The notes beneath the pieces are model-generated. The model worked only from the letters and a program-made list of their open reading frames with translations, was not told the origin of the DNA and made no database searches. The translations under genes were made by a program, and so were the position numbers. This document shows, one piece after another, positions 3,250-64,000 of a DNA stretch of 64,000 nt. The DNA lies in the IMG/VR virus record IMGVR_UViG_3300020195_000009, positions 124,001 to 188,000 of that record; one strand, 5' to 3'. Numbering within the stretch: position 1 is the stretch's first letter; every line of letters begins with the position of its first letter.

Positions 3250-4551
3250 CTATGCTGCGAAGGCTTCCGGGAACTCCTCCAGGAGAACCCGCTTGAAGTC
3301 ATCGGATTCCGCAGCGAAGATCGCCCGGATGACGTCCAGACGATCCTCAAAGTTCAGACGGATCATCGCCAACCGACGCTTCCAGTGGTCACTGAACTCG
3401 TACTCGGTTGGGAAATCCTTGCAGATAGCCTTGGCGATGCTCTTTCGGGCGTCCGCCGTCCCATCCTTATCGATCTTGGATTGACCCTCTTCAGGGCCTC
3501 CCTGAAGAGCCCCTTGCTGAGGCTGGACCATCTGCATGTTTCCGAAGGCCTTCTTGGGGCCATTCGTGTTGCGGAAGGTCATCCCTTCGGCTTCGACGAC
3601 GCTCTCCTTGGGCTTACCGCCCATACCCGAGAGGTCGGCAATCTCAGTCCCACCCCCCGTTGAAAGGGTAGTCTGGATGCCCTCGGTCTGGGAGACCCGC
3701 TGGCCTTGGGGGATCTGAGCTACCACCCTGGACTGAGCCGGTGCTGCTTGAACCCGCTGAGGTTGAGCCGAAGCTTGACGCTGGCCCATCCCCGGCTGGT
3801 TGTTGGCCGCCATGTTGTGCGACTGAGCTTGAGGGGGGACGTAGCCGACGCCTCGGCTCATCACGTCGCCCTTATGAGCCTCCTTCTCAGCGAGATACTG
3901 GGAACGCTGATCTTCGGTCATCCTAGCGAGGACCTCTTGCTCCGAGATGCCCTCCCCCGGTCGAACCTTCACCTGTTCGGCAGTTCGGATGGCAGAACCC
4001 ACGGTGTCCGGGGTCACCCTCGTCTCCATCCTGGCGGGAGTCATGAGGGTACGAGCCACGGGAACACCGAACTCCGCGCCCCCCATCTCGATGGCTCCAG
4101 GACCCCCGTTGAAAGAACGAGCAACCCCACCACCTCGGTTCTGCTGAGCCCGAACGGATTGAGTCTGCTGTTGAGCGGCGGCTGCCCGGTCCCCACGGGA
4201 CATCACGATGCGCTCATCCGACTCGACGGTCGTGATGGCGTTCCTCTTGACCGGCTGCATCGGGTTCTGGCCAAAATCGTTGGCCGACCGGACCTGGATG
4301 TTGGCTGAGGGTGCCGCTTGAATGGGGTCGCTCGGGTCGTAAGTCTCGGAGGGGACGAGCCACCCGAGCTTGAGAGCCCCCCGAAGGGTCGGGAGTACGA
4401 ACCTCTGACCGCCGACTTCCACGTTGGTCCCGTCGAACAGGACCTCCATCTCCGTAGCAACCGTGTAACCCGTGCTTCCTAGAGCAAAGGACCGGGTTGA
4501 AACGTACGAAATCATCTGGCCGGGTTTGAATTTGATCTGATCCATCATCAT
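3250..4551 (-). CDS. Hypothetical protein with Q/G-rich low-complexity middle
   Basis: 433-aa ORF with SD-like GAGGAG upstream and genome-typical codon usage. Confidence 0.65.
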   Translation of the reverse strand: MMMDQIKFKPGQMISYVSTRSFALGSTGYTVATEMEVLFDGTNVEVGGQRFVLPTLRGALKLGWLVPSETYDPSDPIQAAPSANIQVRSANDFGQNPMQPVKRNAITTVESDERIVMSRGDRAAAAQQQTQSVRAQQNRGGGVARSFNGGPGAIEMGGAEFGVPVARTLMTPARMETRVTPDTVGSAIRTAEQVKVRPGEGISEQEVLARMTEDQRSQYLAEKEAHKGDVMSRGVGYVPPQAQSHNMAANNQPGMGQRQASAQPQRVQAAPAQSRVVAQIPQGQRVSQTEGIQTTLSTGGGTEIADLSGMGGKPKESVVEAEGMTFRNTNGPKKAFGNMQMVQPQQGALQGGPEEGQSKIDKDGTADARKSIAKAICKDFPTEYEFSDHWKRRLAMIRLNFEDRLDVIRAIFAAESDDFKRVLLEEFPEAFAA

Positions 4552-12473: not shown

Positions 12474-15400
12474 TCAGGGAGCGAGGGGACGGCCGTTCTC
12501 GGCCTTGCCTGTCTGGACCGCCTGCGACTGGTCATCCTTGTATTGACCCATGTAGGGCTCGTCCGAGTCCGTCTGCTTGGGGGCCGTGGGGGCGTTGAAC
12601 GTCGGCATGTACTTCTCATCCGAGTCCTGCTGGATGACCTTCGCAGACTTGAGGACTTCCACCTGGCGCTTGGCGAGAGACTCATCCCCGTAGGTCGCCT
12701 TCTCGATGTCATCGGCCGTCCGATCGAGATCGTTGACGATGTTCTTGGCGGTCTCGAAGTCCATCCCCCACTTCGTGTGGTTCTCCTGAATGTAACCGGC
12801 GACCTTGTCGAGCCGGTCCAGGATGACGTTGGCTTGCTCCTTGGCGAATTTGACGGTCATGGCGTTTCCCTCTGTCTCTTCCGTTGAGGAGGTCTTTCGG
12901 ACCCCTGGTTTGGTTCCCGAAGTGGCTTTCTCCACCTTGAACCCGAACTTCTTACCTACGTCTTGAAGGGCTTTGAAAGCCTTATCGATGTCCGCTTCGG
13001 GGACTTGAACCCAAACAAGGGTCTCCACACGAAGGCCTTCCTTCTCTTGATGGAAGGTGAGGAAGCCGCCGCCACGGGTGTCCACGACCCGGAGATTAAC
13101 GTCGTGCTCCTTACCGTCGTCACCTTCGGTCGGGATCCACGTCTTGTTGATGGCGTTGATCGTGTCGATGTTGAAGGGAACCGGCTTACGGGTGGGGACA
13201 AAGAGCACGGTGATCGTGTCCACGCCGTAACCGAAACCAGCCGTGTGGACCGTCAACAAGGTCTCGCCCGCAGGTTGCGAGGCCAGTTTGGCGAGCATCA
13301 TGTTGTACAACGGAGCGGAGATCGCTCCGTTGTACTTGCCATCCTCAGCTCGTTGAATCGCGAGGTCCAAAGCGGCTCGGAATCGAGCATCAGGAACCAT
13401 CCCTTCGACGGACTTCGACAGGATGGGGGACTTGAGCCAGTCCTTGGCGGCTGCCAAGAGAGTTCCAAAGTCACTCGGCCCGAGGTCTCGTTGGTGAACC
13501 TGATGCCACTCGGGGTACGAGGCAAACCCCTCGTGACCCTTTGGGTAAGGCTCAACGCCATGATAGATGGCCGTACGGACCGCTTGGCGAGCGTCATCGA
13601 TGGAAAGCGGAGGGGTGCCCATCTGCCAATTTCGGTCCCGATAAGAAGAATAGAGAGAAGCGACCCGTAACGAACGAAGCTCGTCAAATTGCTCCTGACG
13701 GGCCGCTCGCTCCGCCTTGGAGGGCTTACCTTCGTAACCAAGAGGCTTCACTGGAGGCTCCGGGGCGAGCGGGGGTTCAGGTTCAGGAACCTCAAAGGGT
13801 TTTGAGGGGGTCCGATAAGGATCTCCTTTGGCCAACTCCTTCTCATGCTTGATTTTCGCCTTAGTCCACTCGGTGTGCTCTCGTTCAAAGGCCCTGTAGG
13901 CCTTTTTCTGTTCTGCTTCCGCAGCTTTGAACTCACCAATAGACTTCTCGTACGCCTCACCTTCTGCTTGTTTGAGGAACTCCTGGACCTGAGCTTCCTT
14001 TTTGGGATCAAGCCCGCGTAGGGACTGACGGACCCGAACTCGGAAGACCATAGATGGGTCATCAAGCGCAGCCTTTACCTCGGCTGGGTAACGCTTACCT
14101 GCTTTGCGGATCATCTCCGTTGCAGCGGTTAGCTTGTTGGCTATTACTCTCGGGTGGTCCCGCTCGGAGATGACGTCGTTGGACTTTGGATCCAAGAAGC
14201 GCTCATGAGCGGCTCGGTAGTCCTCCCCTTGGAGGTTGGCTACCGCCACCATCTGCGTGTGGGGATCCAGCTCCTTAAGGTTGGATAGGAGCTTATTTCG
14301 CTCTTGGTCCTTCAACGCCTCGCGTTTGGTATTTCTTGAGACCAAGCCAAACCTCTCATCAGGATCCTCACTAACTTGAGGGAACCCGGCAGATGCTTTA
14401 CTAAAGAGGTTTTGAGCTGCCTCTTTAGCTTTGGACTCTCGTTCTTCAGGTGGGAGTGAAGCAGAGGTCAGCGATAGATGAGCGAGGCTGGGTGCTAGGT
14501 GACTGGGAACACCAGACGATTTGAGGGCGTGTGAAACACGCATTTGGGTCGTAACACTAGCCGCTACAACTGCTACCCGATGCTCTTGTACAGCTTGAGC
14601 CTGCTCTTCTTTAGACAGCTCCTCAAATGGCTTTTCAATGCCGTCCGAAGCCTTCCCCTTCTTAGGGAGGGTCTTCACCAGAGCGGGATCCGTGGTGAAT
14701 GAAGCCCCACCATTTTGAATCTCATCTTGCACACTTCGAGGAGCTGGGAGGGACTTGAAGTCTAGGTAGTTCGCAACGACAGCCTTTACATCCTCTGGGT
14801 GCATCAACCTTAATTGAACACGGACCTGAGGAGGTAGGTCTGTGGTAAAGAGTAACTCTGTAGCCTCATGTATCTGTTGCTGAGTGGGGGGCTTTCGCTT
14901 CGGCGGGGGGAAGTCTTGGGCGCTCGTAGGCTTCTTCTCGGGAGCCTTCTCCTTCTCAGGGGCCTTCTCACCTTCAGGAGTCTTCTCACCTTCAGGAGTC
15001 TTCTCGGGGGTTTTCTCTTCCTCGGGGGGTTTCTTGGTGTCGACCTCAGCGGGAGCTTCCTGAGGTCTCTTCGTCCGCTGGGCTTTAGCTACAGGCTTTG
15101 GAACAAGCTCAAGAGCCTTCTTGAGGTCACCAAGGGTTTTGATTTCAGGTGGGAAATCTGCCTTGGGGAAGACCTCTTTTACAGGCTTGCCTGGGTTGCT
15201 ATCGGCGACAGCTTGCAACGCGGTAGCTGGATTTGAAAACGTACCTATGGCGCTCTTTAGGGCCGGGTCGTTCTTCGCTCGCTCTTGAAGCTCTTCCCCT
15301 CCGATACGAGCATCCAATTCCTTGATTGGCTCGTAGGGTGCCTTCGGCTCAGGGTTGAACTTGTCTCGCTTCTTGGGGGCCTCTTGTTTCGATTTAGGCT

Positions 15401-55095: not shown

Positions 55096-55503
55096 CTAGA
55101 GGTTTGAAATTGGGAACTCAATCGTGAAGAGATCCCGCAGTATCATCAACACTCTCTCGTAAAGCTCAGGTTCCCATATCTCTGAAGCCGAGGGATCGAA
55201 GAAGTTGTTGGGGTAGAGAACAACAGAGGTGTCTACTGGAAATTGCCTCGTATCCAGCGTCCCATCTTTGAGAAATGGGACGATTTTGGCCCAATCGTCC
55301 GACCTCACGAGGATGTTGATCCCCCCGCTAGGGTTGAAAAGTCGGATGCACGGGGTGTCGTAAACAACATGACAATCTACCCTTGCCCGACCTCGAAGAA
55401 CCGCCACGATACCCCTAGCTAAGGCCGGGACCTCATTGCGTGTAAGTCGTTGTGGCCTTGACCCATAAACCTGGGAAAGTCGATTGTCCACGCTCAAGAC
55501 CAA
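55096..55503 (-). CDS. Hypothetical protein
   Basis: 135-aa ORF filling the gap between neighbours; lower GC. Confidence 0.55.
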   Translation of the reverse strand: MVLSVDNRLSQVYGSRPQRLTRNEVPALARGIVAVLRGRARVDCHVVYDTPCIRLFNPSGGINILVRSDDWAKIVPFLKDGTLDTRQFPVDTSVVLYPNNFFDPSASEIWEPELYERVLMILRDLFTIEFPISNL

Positions 55504-55515
55504 GGATAACTAGAT

Positions 55516-57572
<2,057 letters not shown>

Positions 57573-57586
57573 GGAGGACCCCTAGC

Positions 57587-57790
57587 TTACACCCGCTCCA
57601 GCCTGGACTTCACCTGGAGGTGCTCCAGATACCCCCGCTGCTCCGTGGCGTCCTTGACCGCCTTGCGGCACATCCGGCAAAGACCGTCAGGGGGAGGTGG
57701 CATGTCGAAGCCGACTTCTTCCCATTCCGCGAAGGGCCTGGGCTTGAGAAGGGGGACGCAGATGGAGCACTTGACCTCGTGACCCATCAT
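57587..57790 (-). CDS. Small Cys4 protein
   Basis: CSIC...CRMC; 67 aa, directly after rtcB. Confidence 0.5.
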   Translation of the reverse strand: MMGHEVKCSICVPLLKPRPFAEWEEVGFDMPPPPDGLCRMCRKAVKDATEQRGYLEHLQVKSRLERV

Positions 57791-57793
57791 GGA

Positions 57794-59200
57794 TCATTCG
57801 GCCCCTTTGATGTTCGCGACCGGCATCATGCGGTGGGCGATCTTGGCGATGCCTTCATCTTCGAGAACCGCAAGAACGGCATCGAGGTCCTTGTAGACGT
57901 GCTTGCATTCGTCGACCGGGATGTTCTTGTGGTTCGAGATGATCCCTTCGATCGTCACACCTGCAAACGTTCGCTGGACGTCGTGCATCTCAGCGTTGAT
58001 TCGATCCTGCTTGGGACCCAGGCTCTTCTTTGCCTTGCTTCGCCCAAGAGTCCGACCCGACCCGTGGTTGACGGAGTACCCGGACTTGGAGGCTCCAGCC
58101 TGAGCGAATAGGATCGCAGCTCCGTCGTACATCGAACCGGGGATGCAGCACGGGTGTCCTGTGTCCGCCCACTTCGTCCCCACGAGATCGGGATGCCCAG
58201 CCGGGAAGGCACGGGTTGCCCCTTTACGGTGGACGAAGCCCTTCTTCGTGGTGCCGTCGGGGAGGACCAGGGTTTCCTCTTGGACGAGGTTGTGGCTGAT
58301 CTCGTAGTAGACCTCGCCCTCAACGTTGAAAACCTCTTGGAGAGCCTCCTGGATGCCTTTGACGATGACGTGGCGGTTGGCCACGGCAAAGTTGGCAGCG
58401 CTGTTGTGGTAGCGCCAGTAGTCCTTCCCAACCTGCTCGTCCATCCGAAGCCAGGACTCTTCACGTCGGTTACTGGGAAGACCACGGGCCTTGGCCCCCT
58501 CGAAGAAGAAGTGATCGGCGGTTTGCCAGCCGTACCCCCGGCTCCCGCAATGGATCATCACCCAGACTTCTGCTGTGTCCCGATCCACCTGCATCTCGAT
58601 GAAATGGTTGCCTCCGCCGACACTACCAAGCTGAGGGATGACCTTCGAGTAGGCCTTCTGGACCATCTTGAAGTCGGTACCCTCCGGGATCGGGATGTAC
58701 TGACGTTCGCATAGGTCGGCTGAGACCCCCAAGGCCTTGGCTCCGAACCGGAGGATCTCATCGGCCTGGTTCTGGTTGAAGTGGGGCATGAGGTTGGGTC
58801 GTTCGGACCCAACCCCGGTCGCGATTCGCTTCTCGACCTCCTTGACCCAACGCTCCCGAGGGTACCGACCCCGAACCCCACTCGCCGTGAGCCCAGGGAC
58901 CTTCATGTAAAGGACCCCACACGAAATGTCGTAACCAGAACCCGACTGGATGATCGTGTCCTCGGTTACAACGACCCCACCGACAGGAATTCCGTATCCG
59001 ATATGACAATCGGGCATAAGGTAGGCGCCGATGACTCCCTCATAGGAGGCGCTCGTCTTGATCTGCTCCCACATGTTCTCTTCCGAGGAGTTGTAGAGAT
59101 CCTCGGACAAAAAGGCGTGCGCCTCCACCTTCATCTCGCCGACTTTTGGCAAGACATAGTGGTTGGAGCCGACCTTTTGCGCTGTGTACTTGAGGGACAT
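57794..59200 (-). CDS. rtcB: RtcB RNA ligase
   Basis: MPDCHIGYGIPVG, GYDISCG, GSVGGGNHFIE, HCGSRG, HN, HRKGAT, PGSM, HGSGR, YKD. Confidence 0.95.
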   Translation of the reverse strand: MSLKYTAQKVGSNHYVLPKVGEMKVEAHAFLSEDLYNSSEENMWEQIKTSASYEGVIGAYLMPDCHIGYGIPVGGVVVTEDTIIQSGSGYDISCGVLYMKVPGLTASGVRGRYPRERWVKEVEKRIATGVGSERPNLMPHFNQNQADEILRFGAKALGVSADLCERQYIPIPEGTDFKMVQKAYSKVIPQLGSVGGGNHFIEMQVDRDTAEVWVMIHCGSRGYGWQTADHFFFEGAKARGLPSNRREESWLRMDEQVGKDYWRYHNSAANFAVANRHVIVKGIQEALQEVFNVEGEVYYEISHNLVQEETLVLPDGTTKKGFVHRKGATRAFPAGHPDLVGTKWADTGHPCCIPGSMYDGAAILFAQAGASKSGYSVNHGSGRTLGRSKAKKSLGPKQDRINAEMHDVQRTFAGVTIEGIISNHKNIPVDECKHVYKDLDAVLAVLEDEGIAKIAHRMMPVANIKGAE

Positions 59201-59279
59201 GTGTGATCCGATTTACGTGATGTTACTAGAGAAGCGGGAAGTTTGAGATTCGCTAACGTTGGGTTGGTTCTGCAACCAG

Positions 59280-59364
59280 CGGAAGATGGAGGTCCCGACC
59301 CCCTAAGCCTTTCAGCTCTCATCCGATTTCAAATCGGCTCCCGGCCCTGCCGAGTTCATCTTCC
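59280..59364 (-). tRNA. Non-canonical 8/4-fold tRNA-Ser(TGA)
   Basis: 8-bp acceptor GGAAGATG/CATCTTCC plus discriminator G; long D-stem CTCGGC/GCCGGG; anticodon loop TT-TGA-AA; long variable arm with GAAA loop; 4-bp T-stem GGGG/CCTC with loop GTCGGGA. Confidence 0.72.
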
Positions 59365-59368
59365 AGTT

Positions 59369-59839
59369 TCAGGCCACCCCGCGTGGGTTGCCCCAGGACT
59401 CGGAGAGCCGAGCCTTGAGAATGTTCATGAATAGACCACCCTGCTCCTTGGCATCATCGAGGGCGATGTGTGTGTGTCTGGCGTCCGGGAACCAGACCTT
59501 GGGCATGTTCCGCTTCGTGGACTGGCGGAACTCGATGCCAAGATACGCCGCCACGTAGGTCTTGATGTCCAAGGCGGAGAAGCTGAAAGGGCTCTCCAGC
59601 CCGCAGTTGACGATATACCAGTAGATGAACATGAAATCGAAGGTGGCTGGGTACCCGACGAACACAGGCTTCCCAGGCAAGGACTTCACCCAATTCACGT
59701 ACCGCTTCATCGTCTCCCCGATCGGCATCGGGTCTTTCCGGCAAGCCACCCAAGCGTTCGGGTTCTTGTCCCAAAACTCGCTCTTCGTGAGCGGGTGCAT
59801 CGAAGCCCCCGGAAAGTGCAACCCCCTCTCCCGTTTCAA
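59369..59839 (-). pseudogene. N-terminally truncated DEDD 3'-5' exo(ribo)nuclease (Rv2179c/RNase AS-like)
   Basis: ExoII (ATFDFMF), LDIKTY and ExoIII (HIALDDA..Q) are present. The ExoI DxE motif is absent and there is no room for it before the vWA stop. Confidence 0.6.
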
Positions 59840-59855
59840 CTTTGGTTACGCTGAT

Positions 59856-61445
59856 TTACCAGCGCTTGCTGCGGACCTTACCGACTTTTGCCTTGGAGGG
59901 CTCCGCAGGTGAGGCCGAGAGGGGCTCCCCTGAGGGTGCTACTAGGGACGGCCCCAGAGAGACCCCCCCAAGCAAGATGCTACCTCCGGCGCCATCCCCC
60001 ACCCCGCCGCTCCACGAGCCCCCTACGAGACCCCCAAGGTCGACGGGCGGGGCCGGGACTGCCGGGACTGCCGGGTCTGGTACCACCGGACCCGTGAACT
60101 CCTGGACCATCATGTCCTGCTGGGCGTTCGAGACCGAGTAGTTGTTCGAGACGAGGACCTCTTGATCCTCGGATGCCAGGCCGGAAGCTCGAAGGCCCCG
60201 CGTCATGGCCCTCCTCATCCCTGCCCGGTTTCCAGAGGTATCTCGATAGGAATCCTGGTTCAGATACATGGCGTTGACGTGCCCAGCAACAGCGGCAACA
60301 CCGACATGCCCTCGGGTATTAATCTCACCCCGAACATCCGCTAGAGCCGCCGCAGCCGCCACGAAGTTGCCACCACGGGCAAACTTCTCGGCTTCGACCT
60401 GAGCTTCCACGAGTTGGGCTCGGGCCACGACCTCATCGACTTCCTTCGTGGGGGTCTTCTGCTCGTCCCCGGCCTTGACGAACTGAACTTTAGCCTTGGC
60501 TTCGGCCGTCTTTGTGACGAGCTTCCCATCGGCGTCGATGACCTGGTACTTGAGCTTCACGTCAACAGCGTTGACCTGACGAGGCCCTGGTTGCTTCTGG
60601 GAGGCCAGCTTCACCATCAAGACGAGGTTCACATTCTCCTCGCTGAGAATGTGTGGAATCTTGACCTGAACTTCACCCGTGGTCTCCTCTTCGACATCGG
60701 CATCCGAGAGGACTTTTGTAACGAGGTGCCCGTTGTGAGGAATCACCTCAATCACGACGTCTTGAGCGTAGGTGGAAAGCAGACCCCCAAGCTCCTTCCC
60801 GAAGGCGGCAAGAGCCCCATCCGGGTCTCGGACGTAAGCGTAGTTGCCGTTCCCCTTCGTGGAGAGAGCCTGTAGGAGGTCTTGGTTGGCGTCGTCGCCG
60901 TACCCGAAGGCGGACACAGACGCCCTCCCAGCCTGCTTCTCCAGAAGACCATTCAAGCCCACAGGGTCCGTCACGCCATGGGTAGGCTGACCGTCCGTGA
61001 ACATGATGACCCGGACGAGGGTAGCCTCGGGAAGGTCCATCTCGTTCGCCGTTTGGAGACCGAGGAGCATCCCCGACGAGAAGTTGGTACCGCCTTCGAC
61101 CTTGAACCGGCCGACGAGGGCTTTGAGAGCCTCCTTGTTCTCGGGGATCATCTTCACCGGCTTGGCGTCGACACGAGCCGAATTGGAGAAGCTGATAATA
61201 CCGAGGTAATCCTCGGAGGAGAGGTGCTCAATGAGCTTCAGGATTGACTGCTTGGCGTAGGCCAGCTTGTCACCACCCATCGACCCCGAGATGTCGAGGA
61301 CCGGGAGGATGCAAAGCGGTGGGCGCTTGGCCTGCCAGTCGCCCTTGGGGGCGGTAAGGGAGACGACCAGGTGGAGGTCGTTGTCCTTGTCGTGGCGGAC
61401 GGATTCGTACGTGAATTGGGGCTTGATTTCCATGGGCTTCACCAT
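59856..61445 (-). CDS. von Willebrand factor A domain protein
   Basis: MIDAS LDISGSM, GGTN, FTDG, GYG, GNY; Ig-like flanks and low-complexity tail. Confidence 0.88.
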   Translation of the reverse strand: MVKPMEIKPQFTYESVRHDKDNDLHLVVSLTAPKGDWQAKRPPLCILPVLDISGSMGGDKLAYAKQSILKLIEHLSSEDYLGIISFSNSARVDAKPVKMIPENKEALKALVGRFKVEGGTNFSSGMLLGLQTANEMDLPEATLVRVIMFTDGQPTHGVTDPVGLNGLLEKQAGRASVSAFGYGDDANQDLLQALSTKGNGNYAYVRDPDGALAAFGKELGGLLSTYAQDVVIEVIPHNGHLVTKVLSDADVEEETTGEVQVKIPHILSEENVNLVLMVKLASQKQPGPRQVNAVDVKLKYQVIDADGKLVTKTAEAKAKVQFVKAGDEQKTPTKEVDEVVARAQLVEAQVEAEKFARGGNFVAAAAALADVRGEINTRGHVGVAAVAGHVNAMYLNQDSYRDTSGNRAGMRRAMTRGLRASGLASEDQEVLVSNNYSVSNAQQDMMVQEFTGPVVPDPAVPAVPAPPVDLGGLVGGSWSGGVGDGAGGSILLGGVSLGPSLVAPSGEPLSASPAEPSKAKVGKVRSKRW

Positions 61446-61610
61446 CGAGAACGTGGGAGGTGCCGAGACGCGGAGGGTTGGACAAACCTCCCAAATCTCA
61501 ACGGTTTTCCGTTACGTCCGCGACTTCGCCCAAACCCTAAGGTGCGGCTCCGTCGAAATGAGACCCCAAGCCGAGGCGCGGTCCCGGATGATCATATTAC
61601 ACCGAAATGA

Positions 61611-61648
61611 CGGCAGGGCTCCACCTTTTTCAAAGTGGAGCCCTGCCG
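61611..61648 (-). terminator. Hairpin after HNH gene
   Basis: CGGCAGGGCTCCAC...GTGGAGCCCTGCCG perfect 14-bp stem. Confidence 0.6.
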
Positions 61649-61677
61649 GGGCCAGTAGGTCTCCCTTTCAGGAGTTG

Positions 61678-62241
61678 TTACGCTGCGTGAGCGCCTACCA
61701 CGTAGTAGCCGTCACCGTGCTTGTGGGCCTTCGAGAGGTCCAGGTACGGCCCCCACGCTTCCGGGATCTTCCCCGCATCAATGAAGACCGGGTGAAGGGG
61801 GAGTGCATGAGGCTTGGCCGGCTTGCGGAGGAGGGTCATCTTGGCCTGCTCTGGTGTGCGCCCGCCCTTTCGGTCGTTGCACGGATAGCAGGAGGTCACG
61901 ATGTTGTCCCAGACCGTCTTTCCACCCTGCTTACGCGGGAGGACGTGGTCGTAGTTCAACTCCCTCATGGTGTACCGACCGCCGCAATACTGGCAGCGGA
62001 AGCCGTCACGGGTGAAGACGTTGATGCGGGAGAACTTGACACCCTTCTTGAAACCGCGAACCTGCTCTTTGAGCTGGAGTACGGCGGGGATGAAATACGA
62101 GGTCGACGGAGAACTGACCGTCTCTTCGTAATCCTCCAACACGGTGGCCTTCTCCTGGTACATGAGGCAGATCGCCTCCTCCCAGTTCAGGATCGCGTGG
62201 GGGAGTCCCCAGGAATTCAGAAGCAGTGTACGAGTCTCCAT
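61678..62241 (-). CDS. HNH endonuclease (McrA/HNH_5-like)
   Basis: LLLN...W.EA, FSRINVFTRDGFRCQYCG, DHVLP..QGG..W.N.V.SC..CN..KG.RTP. Confidence 0.9.
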   Translation of the reverse strand: METRTLLLNSWGLPHAILNWEEAICLMYQEKATVLEDYEETVSSPSTSYFIPAVLQLKEQVRGFKKGVKFSRINVFTRDGFRCQYCGGRYTMRELNYDHVLPRKQGGKTVWDNIVTSCYPCNDRKGGRTPEQAKMTLLRKPAKPHALPLHPVFIDAGKIPEAWGPYLDLSKAHKHGDGYYVVGAHAA

Positions 62242-62350
62242 GACACACCTACCTTCGCCTTCTCTTCCTCATGACAGGCCTTCTTTCTGTTCGATGGCCA
62301 CCGAATTGAAGACGCTCACCATGAGCGTCTTCTGACATTGAAGGGGGCGT

Positions 62351-62560
62351 CTAGGACGCTCGACCACTTGTCTGCTTACCCCTCGGGCGTCGGTACCAGA
62401 CAAAGAGCGCCTGACCGTAGGGGGTAGGGACCACATCCCTACCTAAGACCCTCACGCGGGTCTTCTTCTTCCAGTCAGCGTAGGCCCGGAACAGGTCCGG
62501 GGTCACCGGGAAGGGCTCCATCCCATCCGCAGGAGGGTTGAAGGAGGAGAGCAGTTTCAT
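62351..62560 (-). CDS. Small hypothetical protein
   Basis: The track start (62632) lies inside the tmRNA, so ATG 62560 (MKLLSS) is the plausible start. Confidence 0.45.
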   Translation of the reverse strand: MKLLSSFNPPADGMEPFPVTPDLFRAYADWKKKTRVRVLGRDVVPTPYGQALFVWYRRPRGKQTSGRAS

Positions 62561-62578
62561 GACTTTAGACCTAATTTG

Positions 62579-62925
62579 TGGAGCTGCGGGGTACTGCCCC
62601 CCGGTCCTCCAGAAGTCCGATGACGCCTTCATTCACGTACGTAGTCGAAGTATCCCCCTCGACTGAGTTCGTAGATTCGGCCACGACCTATTCCCGCTGT
62701 TCCTCTCGACCTTTGCACCGCAAGACACGTGCTCGGTCCAGCCCTAGTGGTTGACAGGCTCTCCGCTACCAGGACGATCTGGCGGGAACCCGGCCTTCAG
62801 GCCGCCTTGAGAGCGGTGAAAGCGAAAGCGTTGTCGTTGGCGACTAGCTTGTGCTCGATTGAACAGGTCGAGCGCTGTTGTACGCAGATGTCACTTCTTT
62901 CCAGAGTCGAATCTATTTCAGCCCC
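62579..62925 (-). ncRNA. ssrA: tmRNA (one-piece), tag peptide ANDNAFAFTALKAA
   Basis: 5' GGGGCTGAAATAGATTCGAC; 3' CAGCTCC-A with G3-U wobble; resume codon GCC at 62841 to TGA at 62797; T-arm CGGGG-GGCAGTA-CCCCG. Confidence 0.9.
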
Positions 62926-62973
62926 TTTCGTACTCCTACCCTACACCAAGAAGCATCGAAGAGCTAGTGCTAG

Positions 62974-63058
62974 TACCCGTAGAGGGAGTCGAACCCTCAG
63001 CGCCCACAAGGAGCCGCGAATTTTAAATTCACTGCGTCTGCCATTCCGCCACACGGGC
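62974..63058 (-). tRNA. tRNA-Leu(TAA)
   Basis: GCCCGTG/TACGGGT acceptor, TGGCGGAATGGCAGACGC D-arm, loop TT-TAA-AA, long variable arm, GGTTCGACTCC. Confidence 0.9.
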
Positions 63059-63062
63059 CTAG

Positions 63063-63143
63063 TACTCAGGAAGGGGATCGAACCCTCACGGTTTTACCCG
63101 GTGGATTTTGAATCCACTGCGTCTGCCATTCCGCCACCTGAGC
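63063..63143 (-). tRNA. tRNA-Leu(CAA)
   Basis: GCTCAGG/CCTGAGT acceptor, loop TT-CAA-AA, variable arm CGGGTAAAACCG, GGTTCGATCCC. Confidence 0.9.
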
Positions 63144-63152
63144 AAGAAACAG

Positions 63153-63224
63153 TGCGCCATCTAGGAGTTGAACCTAGCCACCCCGCATATCAGACGGGGC
63201 CGTTCACCGGAAACATCATGGCGC
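63153..63224 (-). tRNA. Atypical tRNA-Ile(GAT)
   Basis: GCGCCAT/ATGGCGC acceptor plus A, loop CT-GAT-AT, T-arm CTAGG-TTCAACT-CCTAG; G at position 8 and an unusual D-arm. Confidence 0.7.
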
Positions 63225-63388
63225 AAACGGGAAGGGAACAGGAGCAAGAACAACTCTGCCCGACGTGACTTGCCTTGTTCGCCGATGCTTGGGAGAACCC
63301 AAGAACTCACGGAGAGCTAAGCCGGCCGTCACGTGACGGAGTGAGTCGGCCAACGGTTTTACCCGTTCCAGGTAGGCCCCTTCCCGAA

Positions 63389-63412
63389 ACGAGGCTCCAG
63401 AAGAAGCCTCGT
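63389..63412 (-). terminator. Hairpin/terminator after 63423..63941
   Basis: ACGAGGCTTC-TTCT-GGAGCCTCGT followed by TT. Confidence 0.5.
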
Positions 63413-63422
63413 CCTAGACCCA

Positions 63423-63941
63423 TCACTCGAAGAGCGACGGATCCAAGTCTTCTACCTCGATCTCCCTGCCGTTGGCGACTGCAATAGCCGCCCTCAGCGA
63501 GCCGGCCTTCTTGCCGGTCTGGATGGCGAGCTTCACCGCATCTGCGGCGGTGATGGTGCGGATCGCACGGATCTGGTTTGGATCCCGCGTATCCACATCG
63601 TCCATATAGGACGGACGGCTGTTCTTCTCACTGACGGTGCTCTTCCACATCTTCTCGATGCGACCGACACCACCGATGCGCTTGATGGCCTCAGCGAGAG
63701 ACATCCTCTCCCCGTTCGCCTCAACCTGCACAGCGAGGTTGTACCTCATTTGAACGACCTGGAGCTTGGCCAAGGCCGCTTCCGCCTTGGCAAAGGTCTC
63801 GATCACCTCTTGAGGTGTCTCCTTTTGCTCGTCGGGGAACTTCTTGAGAGACTGATTGAAGGTCCCGGACGCCGTATCCCTTCTCAGCTCGTACTGTTTG
63901 ATCGCCTCTCTCAAGGCGTACCCTGACGTTTTCATCTTCAT
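63423..63941 (-). CDS. Helical protein, possibly DIP1984-like
   Basis: L.EA......R...; L..L...MRYNL...MSLAEAI pattern; embedded in the tRNA cluster; SD GGAGAG. Confidence 0.5.
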   Translation of the reverse strand: MKMKTSGYALREAIKQYELRRDTASGTFNQSLKKFPDEQKETPQEVIETFAKAEAALAKLQVVQMRYNLAVQVEANGERMSLAEAIKRIGGVGRIEKMWKSTVSEKNSRPSYMDDVDTRDPNQIRAIRTITAADAVKLAIQTGKKAGSLRAAIAVANGREIEVEDLDPSLFE

Positions 63942-63959
63942 CTCTCCGTTCCAAGTTAC

Positions 63960-63965
63960 TACACC
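63960..63965 (-). promoter_or_regulatory. Putative early/middle promoter motif GGTGTA (representative copy)
   Basis: Copies at or near gene boundaries at 5545, 6060, 36075, 38265, 44390, 49972, 57211, 57588, 61598 and 62942. Confidence 0.55.
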
Positions 63966-63967
63966 AG

Positions 63968-64000
63968 TACGAGGTGCGGGACTCGAACCCGCCTGGTCTA
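63968..64000 (-). tRNA. 3' part of a tRNA (identity outside window)
   Basis: GCGGG-TTCGAGT-CCCGC T-arm followed by acceptor strand ACCTCGT-A. Confidence 0.75.

Follow-up and report, generated by a model that had tools for sequence, protein, structure and literature searches.

The RNA ligase RtcB connects 3'-phosphate or 2',3'-cyclic phosphate termini to 5'-OH termini, and besides the bacterial rtcBA operons there is the rsr-yrlBA-rtcBA locus of Salmonella, in which the genes for Ro60 (a protein with a vWA domain), Y RNA and RtcB lie together. The locus described here, positions 57,794 to 64,000 of a 64,000-nucleotide stretch of DNA (the window, meaning the whole stretch that was analyzed) from IMG/VR virus record IMGVR_UViG_3300020195_000009, likewise holds RtcB beside the gene of a vWA-domain protein and a structured non-coding RNA, together with an HNH endonuclease gene, a transfer-messenger RNA (tmRNA) and tRNA genes. 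It differs from the Salmonella and rtcBA arrangements in having no TROVE, RtcA, RtcR or Rfam Y-RNA match, in the architecture of its vWA protein, which is that of ArnB and ITIH, and in that the phage RNA and the vWA gene are also kept where RtcB is missing. For jumbo phages, tRNA provisioning combined with RtcB/Rnl repair has already been proposed as counter-defence (Iyer et al., 2021; PMC7824862), and tmRNA, SmpB and release factors are on record for huge phages (Al-Shayeb et al., 2020; PMC7162821). Such systems resemble this locus in their large tRNA set, tmRNA, RtcB and phage size of >200 kb, with the countering of attacks on translation as the proposed role; here, however, RtcB occupies a defined slot in an HNH-vWA-GroEL backbone and is often absent, and no SmpB, polynucleotide kinase, TROVE or Archease accompanies it. 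Regarded as an island, the finding is ordinary, because giant-phage tRNA sets, tmRNA and RtcB were already known and a counter-defence role had already been proposed for them.

The source record is 286,005 bp long, comes from a microbial-mat metagenome and has a CheckV completeness estimate of 60%; the window corresponds to its bases 124001–188000. It is an uncultured megaphage, and has no nucleotide match to cultured phages. The reading preferred here, to which a probability of roughly 0.7 is attached, is that the segment is the junction of a 45-tRNA array and its tmRNA with a conserved backbone of this phage lineage, in which RtcB is optional, the vWA and HNH genes are independent of it, and a structured leader RNA precedes vWA. 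The newest content is this vWA-leader RNA, followed by a variant T-loop in the tmRNA.

An earlier, sequence-only reading had taken the segment for an integrated translation-rescue island, a co-oriented cluster of about 6 kb. Its parts are all present, as profile, Rfam, ARAGORN and folding evidence agree for RtcB, tmRNA, tRNAs, vWA, HNH, a DEDDh exonuclease relic and two structured spacers (Table 1), and all of them bear on RNA or translation. The co-orientation also held up, with every feature of the segment on the minus strand, but the far boundary of the cluster is the end of the window. ARAGORN predicts 47 tRNAs in the whole record, 45 of which form one minus-strand array of ~17 kb (genome 186973–203829); it begins at window position 62973, and the studied segment is its 3' edge. 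The window end cuts through this array, of which a further 16 kb follow, so the cluster does not stop there at a biological boundary. The discreteness implied by an integrated island was not borne out either, as GC content stays between 0.55 and 0.63 across window positions 50–64 kb without any shift, neither composition nor boundaries set the segment apart from the surrounding genome, and both the minus-strand run and the syntenic backbone extend to either side. Downstream of GroEL, on the same strand, are genes for clamp-loader subunits, class II ribonucleotide reductase, NAD-dependent DNA ligase and RecD2, and upstream a VanW-like gene, orotidine monophosphate decarboxylase, a GmrSD_C-like nuclease and another HNH gene are dispersed within the tRNA array (genome 187900–205900, L029; L numbers denote loci and G numbers records). 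No paralog of any cluster protein occurs in the record. Terminator-like GC-rich hairpins with TTTCG-type tails, of a kind also seen elsewhere in the genome, follow orf172, the tmRNA region and HNH, and because they split the cluster they suggest several transcription units and not one operon.

Related loci were gathered through RtcB, a vWA profile, exact-protein look-ups and a vWA-blind RNA pattern, and were mapped with tblastn and ARAGORN. This yielded 28 distinct loci with a common order, namely tRNA array, (orf172), (tmRNA), HNH, vWA, a slot, (a 126-amino-acid open reading frame, ORF), GroEL, a 135-amino-acid ORF and a 77-amino-acid ORF. In 11 of them the slot is occupied by RtcB (the window, L028/L061, L002, L060, L014/L016, L065, L003, L007, L081, L005/L017 and L015), and the slot is without RtcB in the remaining 17, including the closest relative, L052, whose vWA and GroEL proteins are 93 and 98% identical to those of the window. 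Whole-record searches found RtcB nowhere in the complete relatives G019, G021 and G026, and ~200 kb away from this position in G023, G025 and G027, while G003, G005, G007, G010 and G011 encode an orthologous RtcB (56–74% identical) and no vWA ortholog. From the slot occupancy, the three complete relatives without RtcB and the five with RtcB only, it is concluded that the backbone comprises HNH, vWA and GroEL, whereas RtcB is an optional cargo gene to which neither vWA nor HNH is specific. The co-conservation expected from the sequence-only reading is therefore found in the gene order, which is kept in many related megaphages, but not in RtcB, and the proposal that vWA and HNH act as RNA-repair partners is not supported, as both are retained in loci that lack RtcB and some relatives have RtcB but not vWA. 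The RtcB of L065 is only 29% identical to that of the window and represents a different lineage; its position in the same vWA-GroEL slot therefore indicates independent acquisition at one position. Other contents of the slot are tRNAs, an Rv2179c-like exonuclease, found there in ~15 loci, and the SpoU methylase of L028. GroEL, which sits outside the segment coordinates, is syntenic in all 28 loci and shares at most 46% identity with cultured-phage proteins among the matches listed. The 126-amino-acid ORF gives tblastn matches of 34–84% identity in many of the relatives' loci. That RtcB can be swapped in and out of a fixed slot corrects the idea of vWA and HNH as repair cofactors, and provides a natural series with and without RtcB in which its contribution could be tested.

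The window RtcB looks catalytically competent, judging by its sequence, because all catalytic residues are kept: D91, C94, N198, H199, H217, H303, H379 and R383 match, in the alignment, the metal-binding and guanylylation residues D95, C98, N202, H203, H234, H329, H404 and R408 of PH1602, the RtcB of P. horikoshii, and are invariant in 14 relatives. Its identity to 480 phage records stays below 33%. The RtcB neighborhood of phage phiCbK was considered as a counterpart and set aside, being non-syntenic (a band-7 protein and Pth, with no tRNAs). No intron-containing tRNAs that would need a splicing ligase were found. During infection, RtcB would most likely reseal 2',3'-cyclic-phosphate/5'-OH breaks in tRNAs and tmRNA. 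In one relative (L010:8645–11134; record G009, 55107–57455), RtcB is interrupted after approximately residue 50–100 by an in-frame insertion of ~350 amino acids, giving an open frame of 834 amino acids, and the insertion looks like an intein.

On the earlier reading, RtcB, tmRNA, tRNAs, vWA, HNH and the exonuclease would make up a single co-selected module for repair, replacement and rescue against host ribotoxins. Although gene order is kept in many relatives, the slot cargo is all RNA-related, the same argument is made in the jumbo-phage proposals (PMC7824862) and tmRNA is reported as the most frequent bacterial RtcB substrate (PMC11090510), such a module is improbable, given that RtcB is missing from most backbone loci and from three complete genomes, that vWA and RtcB occur independently, that the exonuclease is broken in the window, that the record has no SmpB, TROVE or CCA-adding genes and that terminator-like hairpins split the cluster. 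Nor does tmRNA track RtcB: of the loci with RtcB 7 of 10 have a tmRNA, and of those without 7 of 15. What survives of the overall interpretation is its RNA-repair and translation theme; a counter-defence role of tRNAs, tmRNA and RtcB is plausible, but a dedicated integrated module that includes vWA and HNH is unsupported by co-occurrence.

In the arrangement favored here, the backbone would run HNH, leader RNA, vWA, variable slot, GroEL, clamp loader and nucleotide-metabolism genes. The leader RNA was spotted by aligning the HNH-vWA spacers of relatives whose vWA proteins are 66–93% identical, where the intergenic block is more conserved than the flanking genes; the spacer in the window (61446–61677) folds with z = -3.3 relative to shuffles. 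RNAalifold predicted three stem-loops from 10 sequences; of their 37 pairs, 17 show compensatory changes. A covariance model run over 1.3 Mb of loci then gave 38 matches, all on the vWA strand directly 5' of vWA, including distant loci without any other shared synteny, and the 41 matches in total all end on that strand within ~60 nucleotides of the vWA start. Across 36 distinct sequences, 92% of cells are in pairs and double changes occur at each of the 37 pairs; doubly changed cells number 285, compared with 83 ± 10 in shuffles (none of 500 reaches the observed number, and slid partners give at most 55), counts that are somewhat inflated towards structure since the alignment was fitted to the model. 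A second RNAalifold run on the same alignment kept 31 pairs, all compensated. When 27 whole records were scanned, exactly one match was present in 20 of the 21 with vWA and none in the six without, and the vWA-blind IUPAC pattern returned 10 matches from 2.9 million viral contigs, nine of which lie directly before a vWA gene while the tenth fails the model. The RNA has no match among the 4227 families of Rfam 15, and the available portions of PMC7824862, PMC7162821 and PMC11090510 contain no mention of a vWA gene with a leader RNA. It is a new family of structured RNA, strictly coupled to vWA in dozens of uncultured megaphages and so far confined to megaphage vWA genes.

Each of the three hairpins carries the same internal loop, made up of a CCGC strand and a UUGGG strand, with the strand order reversed in P3. 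The closing helix of P3 ends just 5' of the ribosome-binding site, and in many relatives an ACGGAGG site follows P3 directly. The leader is probably a cis-acting 5' operator, and probably protein-bound; it would act on translation, with a protein binding the three CCGC/UUGGG loops, and that protein may be vWA itself. In this it is comparable to protein-binding leaders, such as those of ribosomal proteins and the T4 translational operators, and to orphan riboswitch candidates, which also have a covarying structure fixed 5' of one gene family and abutting the ribosome-binding site; it departs from all of these in repeating its CCGC/UUGGG loop three times and in matching no Rfam family. The conserved structure, the fixed 5' position and the nearby ribosome-binding site also fit a riboswitch that senses a metabolite or ion and controls vWA and the downstream genes, but an internal loop repeated three times is more usual in operators bound by a protein and the function of the downstream gene suggests no ligand, which makes a riboswitch unlikely.

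It is similarly doubtful that the leader is a stand-alone small RNA which, instead of acting in cis, joins the vWA protein in a ribonucleoprotein analogous to that of Ro60 and Y RNA. The one-to-one coupling of RNA and vWA gene is strict, the three repeated loops resemble protein-binding sites, Ro60 also has a vWA domain, and in Salmonella the Y RNA genes lie beside rsr and rtcB; however, no terminator separates the RNA from the vWA start codon, the ribosome-binding site follows P3 directly, the vWA protein has no TROVE domain, and its fold is that of ArnB/ITIH and not of Ro60. Read depth over the leader is also zero in the single metatranscriptome that shows the tmRNA, and no RNA-seq support for the leader was found. 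A broader possibility, somewhat less doubtful but still rather unlikely, is that vWA and its leader form a new RNA-protein unit of a widespread megaphage lineage, whose loops bind vWA, either in autoregulation or as a true ribonucleoprotein, and which acts on translation or RNA quality control as a structurally unrelated analog of Ro60-Y RNA; its neighbors would be the tRNA/tmRNA array and the slot in which RNA-repair genes collect. Whether operator or otherwise, the leader provides a concrete way to test what the phage vWA protein, opaque and very widespread, does, and adds a phage-specific candidate regulatory RNA or ribonucleoprotein to a catalog dominated by bacterial motifs. The GGTGTAnnATG box upstream of it is a candidate promoter -10 region. 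The terminator-like hairpin between HNH and the leader (61611–61648) was not flagged in a scan for the T-run consensus.

Some observations weigh against the preferred reading of a tRNA array joined to a backbone with optional cargo and a leader operator, beside the inflation of the covariation counts mentioned above. The slot repeatedly holds RNA-related genes (exoribonuclease, tRNAs, SpoU methylase, RtcB and the unrelated RtcB of L065), which hints at a looser functional theme beyond pure synteny; this is suggestive and is not proof of a module. Distant vWA loci have a 191-amino-acid RF-1/PCRF protein (PrfH-sized), PTH2-like peptidyl-tRNA hydrolases and a cREC domain protein as neighbors (L027:11981–12556 and 13192–13482; L024:336–671 and 3974–4369). 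Finally, the sole sign of expression is the tmRNA of a relative in one metatranscriptome.

Table 1. Features of the segment and its immediate flanks (window positions).
Feature	Position	Strand	Evidence and remarks
GroEL-type chaperonin	55516..57195	-	Cpn60_TCP1 E 1e-61; PHROG 5725 E 7e-138; downstream backbone anchor
Two small ORFs, 126 and 67 amino acids, between RtcB and GroEL	57192..57790	-	no Pfam or PHROG match
RtcB RNA ligase	57794..59200	-	PF01139 E 4.4e-86, profile positions 1–426 (full-length match)
tRNA-Ser(UGA)-like gene	59279..59364	-	ARAGORN only at -ps85 or -ps80
DEDDh exonuclease relic (Rv2179c-like, N-terminally truncated), 156 amino acids	59369..59839	-	PHROG 192 E 1.5e-5, C-terminal part only
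vWA protein, 529 amino acids	59856..61445	-	PF00092 E 4e-16
vWA-leader RNA, three stem-loops	61442..61588	-	~150 nucleotides; P1 ~61585–61560, P2 61555–61521, P3 61518–61450
GGTGTAnnATG box upstream of leader	61593..61603	-	aligned in five relatives; 1 in window vs 0.07 expected
Terminator-like 17-bp GC-rich hairpin after HNH, then TCATTTCGG tail	61611..61648	-	sequence and fold
HNH endonuclease, 187 amino acids	61678..62241	-	HNH_5 E 1.4e-13; PHROG 16726 E 2e-31
Terminator-like 11-bp hairpin between tmRNA region and HNH	62308..62332	-	TTTCG-type tail
tmRNA	62576..62925	-	RF00023 76.9 bits vs gathering score 47
tRNA-Leu(UAA), Leu(CAA), Ile(GAU)	62973..63224	-	ARAGORN; Rfam 47.7, 52.3, 30.3 bits; last three genes of the array
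Structured spacer	63225..63422	-	z = -3.8; terminator-like hairpin 63387–63414, then multibranched fold
172-amino-acid ORF (orf172)	63423..63941	-	47–63% identity in >10 loci, inside relatives' tRNA arrays; no Pfam/PHROG family
tRNA-Val(GAC), 3' part	63967..64000	-	cut by window end; whole gene at genome 187967–188039

The vWA protein itself probably starts at the ATG at 61433. Its metal ion-dependent adhesion site (MIDAS) motif, DxSxS...T...D, is intact, with D51, S53, S55, T120 and D151 invariant in 40 homologs, and in its AlphaFold model (predicted local distance difference test score 85) a beta-sandwich and a helical domain follow the vWA domain, and the tail is disordered. The best fold matches of this model are 4fx5, ArnB (8s05) and ITIH1, with TM-scores of 0.71–0.74 (target-normalized) and identities of only 14–17%; Sec23/24 come next, and sequence matches in the PDB reach E 6e-26 for ITIH1. 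ArnB, 4fx5 and ITIH, which have a Sec23/24-like core, share with the phage protein the MIDAS vWA domain followed by beta-sandwich and helical domain; the phage protein differs in that its C-terminal tail ends in a conserved motif and its gene has a leader RNA of its own, and no ArnA-like FHA/zinc-ribbon partner was found nearby. The disordered tail (residues 470–529, window ~59856–60038) ends in a nearly invariant K..RSxRW, in which W529 is invariant, and this motif may be a docking peptide.

The vWA family is almost wholly metagenomic, with 2,789 representatives at the 50%-identity level (E <= 1e-30), and cultured phages have essentially no homolog. Domain fusions among its long members are limited to eukaryote-type RING-vWA proteins and are uninformative. 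Cellular homologs (40–46% identity) are nearly all chromosomal, from Anaeromyxobacter and other Myxococcota with 69–76% GC (L032–L048). Several of these adjoin a WYL/PafC-type regulator, and in A. oryzae also an ADP-ribosylglycohydrolase; no RtcB, HNH, GroEL or leader RNA is nearby in these cellular loci. The homologs cluster in Anaeromyxobacteraceae and may be a weak hint of the host lineage or of gene exchange. As a lead only, the ESM Atlas contains a Myxococcota cluster that fuses vWA to a ribosomal L7/L12 C-terminal domain and resembles the phage vWA (language-model score 0.93).

The tmRNA, at 76.9 bits, has the lowest score when compared with its relatives (94–168 bits), and was missed by ARAGORN at default settings. 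It has both an alanine acceptor, with a G3·U70 pair and no encoded CCA end, and a tag ORF with a resume codon, which encodes ANDNAFAFTALKAA followed by a stop in a frame that aligns with the ANDN... tags of relatives. Its T-loop is not canonical, reading GGCAGUA (62592–62598) on an intact stem where all 15 of 15 relatives have a UUCGAnU-type loop. The same GGCAGUA loop occurs in an independent sediment sample, strain X2 (~97.7% identical here), in which the 350-nucleotide tmRNA differs from the window at 3 positions, compared with 27 in the other ~980 nucleotides. In a sediment metatranscriptome (X16), a 307-nucleotide contig covers 62640–62925 with 9 differences, and because it matches the tmRNA without depth on the protein-coding flanks, the tmRNA of a close relative is probably expressed in nature.

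Five tRNA or tRNA-like genes were found in the segment, two of them weak or atypical (the Ser-like gene, and Ile at 30 bits), in line with the at least five, two of them non-canonical, that had been counted from the sequence. Neither default ARAGORN nor Rfam calls the Ser-like gene, but at -ps85 it forms a cloverleaf with a UGA anticodon, a deviant D-arm and the T-loop GTCGGGA instead of TTCGAGA. Its ortholog in L052 (80% identical) is called as tRNA-Ser(tga) at the default threshold, and L002 has a tRNA-Ser(tga) in the same slot. Within its T-arm (59288–59303), G stands at T-loop positions 54 and 58, where the ortholog has U and A. The spacer that contains this gene (59201–59368) was also tried as a structured element and rejected, since it folds no better than shuffles (z = +0.2). 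As for the second structured spacer, at 63225–63422, it has no homolog in the fetched loci and no tRNA or Rfam match. An ORF at 62351–62560 was dismissed as a gene, not being conserved as a protein.

The array covers 19 amino acids, with no tRNA-Trp found in the 286-kb fragment, and most of its tRNAs lack an encoded CCA end. Under the preferred reading of the array and tmRNA as neighbors of the backbone, these genes would supply translation capacity and ribosome rescue. Searches of the 286-kb record found no SmpB, PolyA_pol-type CCA-adding enzyme, TROVE (PF05731) or Archease, leaving the suggestion that Ro60/TROVE, SmpB and a CCA-adding enzyme might be companions of the locus without a basis in this record; SmpB was likewise missing from every one of the 18 related records that were searched, of which five have a completeness of at least 90%. 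Since SmpB and the CCA-adding enzyme are missing and most tRNAs and the tmRNA have no encoded CCA, the phage RNAs would have to rely on host factors, and would presumably use the SmpB, alanyl-tRNA synthetase and CCA-adding enzyme of the host because the phage encodes none of them.

The same genes could instead serve mainly to match the codon usage of a 57% GC phage to a differing host and to sustain late translation; the array, tmRNA and Ser-like tRNA would then not be a defence countermeasure, and RtcB would be a general RNA-maintenance accessory. This is a tenable alternative, although at somewhat less than even odds: it fits the coverage of 19 amino acids, the GC-rich Myxococcota homologs of vWA, which hint at a much GC-richer host, and a common interpretation of huge-phage translation gene sets (PMC7162821), yet it is compatible with a defence role and does not exclude one.

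Outside the window, two amber-suppressor tRNA(CUA) genes are present at genome 239889–239963 and 241110–241182 (L030:889–963 and 2110–2182; Rfam 55.9 and 64.1 bits). Recoding of TAG was considered on account of these two genes, but neither the crude coverage of read-through ORFs nor the usage of stop codons nor a single read-through translation with X at each TAG gave evidence of it, and the central ORF ends at TAG.

The HNH protein matches its profile and has the flanking CxxC pairs CQYC and CYPC, read from the sequence. Its gene is single-copy in the genome and directly upstream of vWA in ~22 loci, and in L028 the HNH and vWA ORFs overlap by 4 nucleotides. The exonuclease at the vWA end of the slot was correctly described as a DEDD relic. 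It retains ExoII (FD) and ExoIII (HxxxxD), as in the Rv2179c-like DEDDh exoribonucleases (PF16473), but lacks the ExoI DxE, and the window copy gives no PF16473 match, whereas orthologs in L003, L007 and L028 are ~190 amino acids long, have ExoI as DVETDG and score above the cut-off for that family; in L028 the full-length exonuclease occupies the same position. It is the freshly truncated remnant of a slot gene. At the vWA/exonuclease junction, strain X2, which is 95–98% identical to the window and comes from a sediment metagenome, has 418 nucleotides where the window has 53 (59804–59856), which documents the truncation as a recent deletion, and RtcB is kept in this strain.

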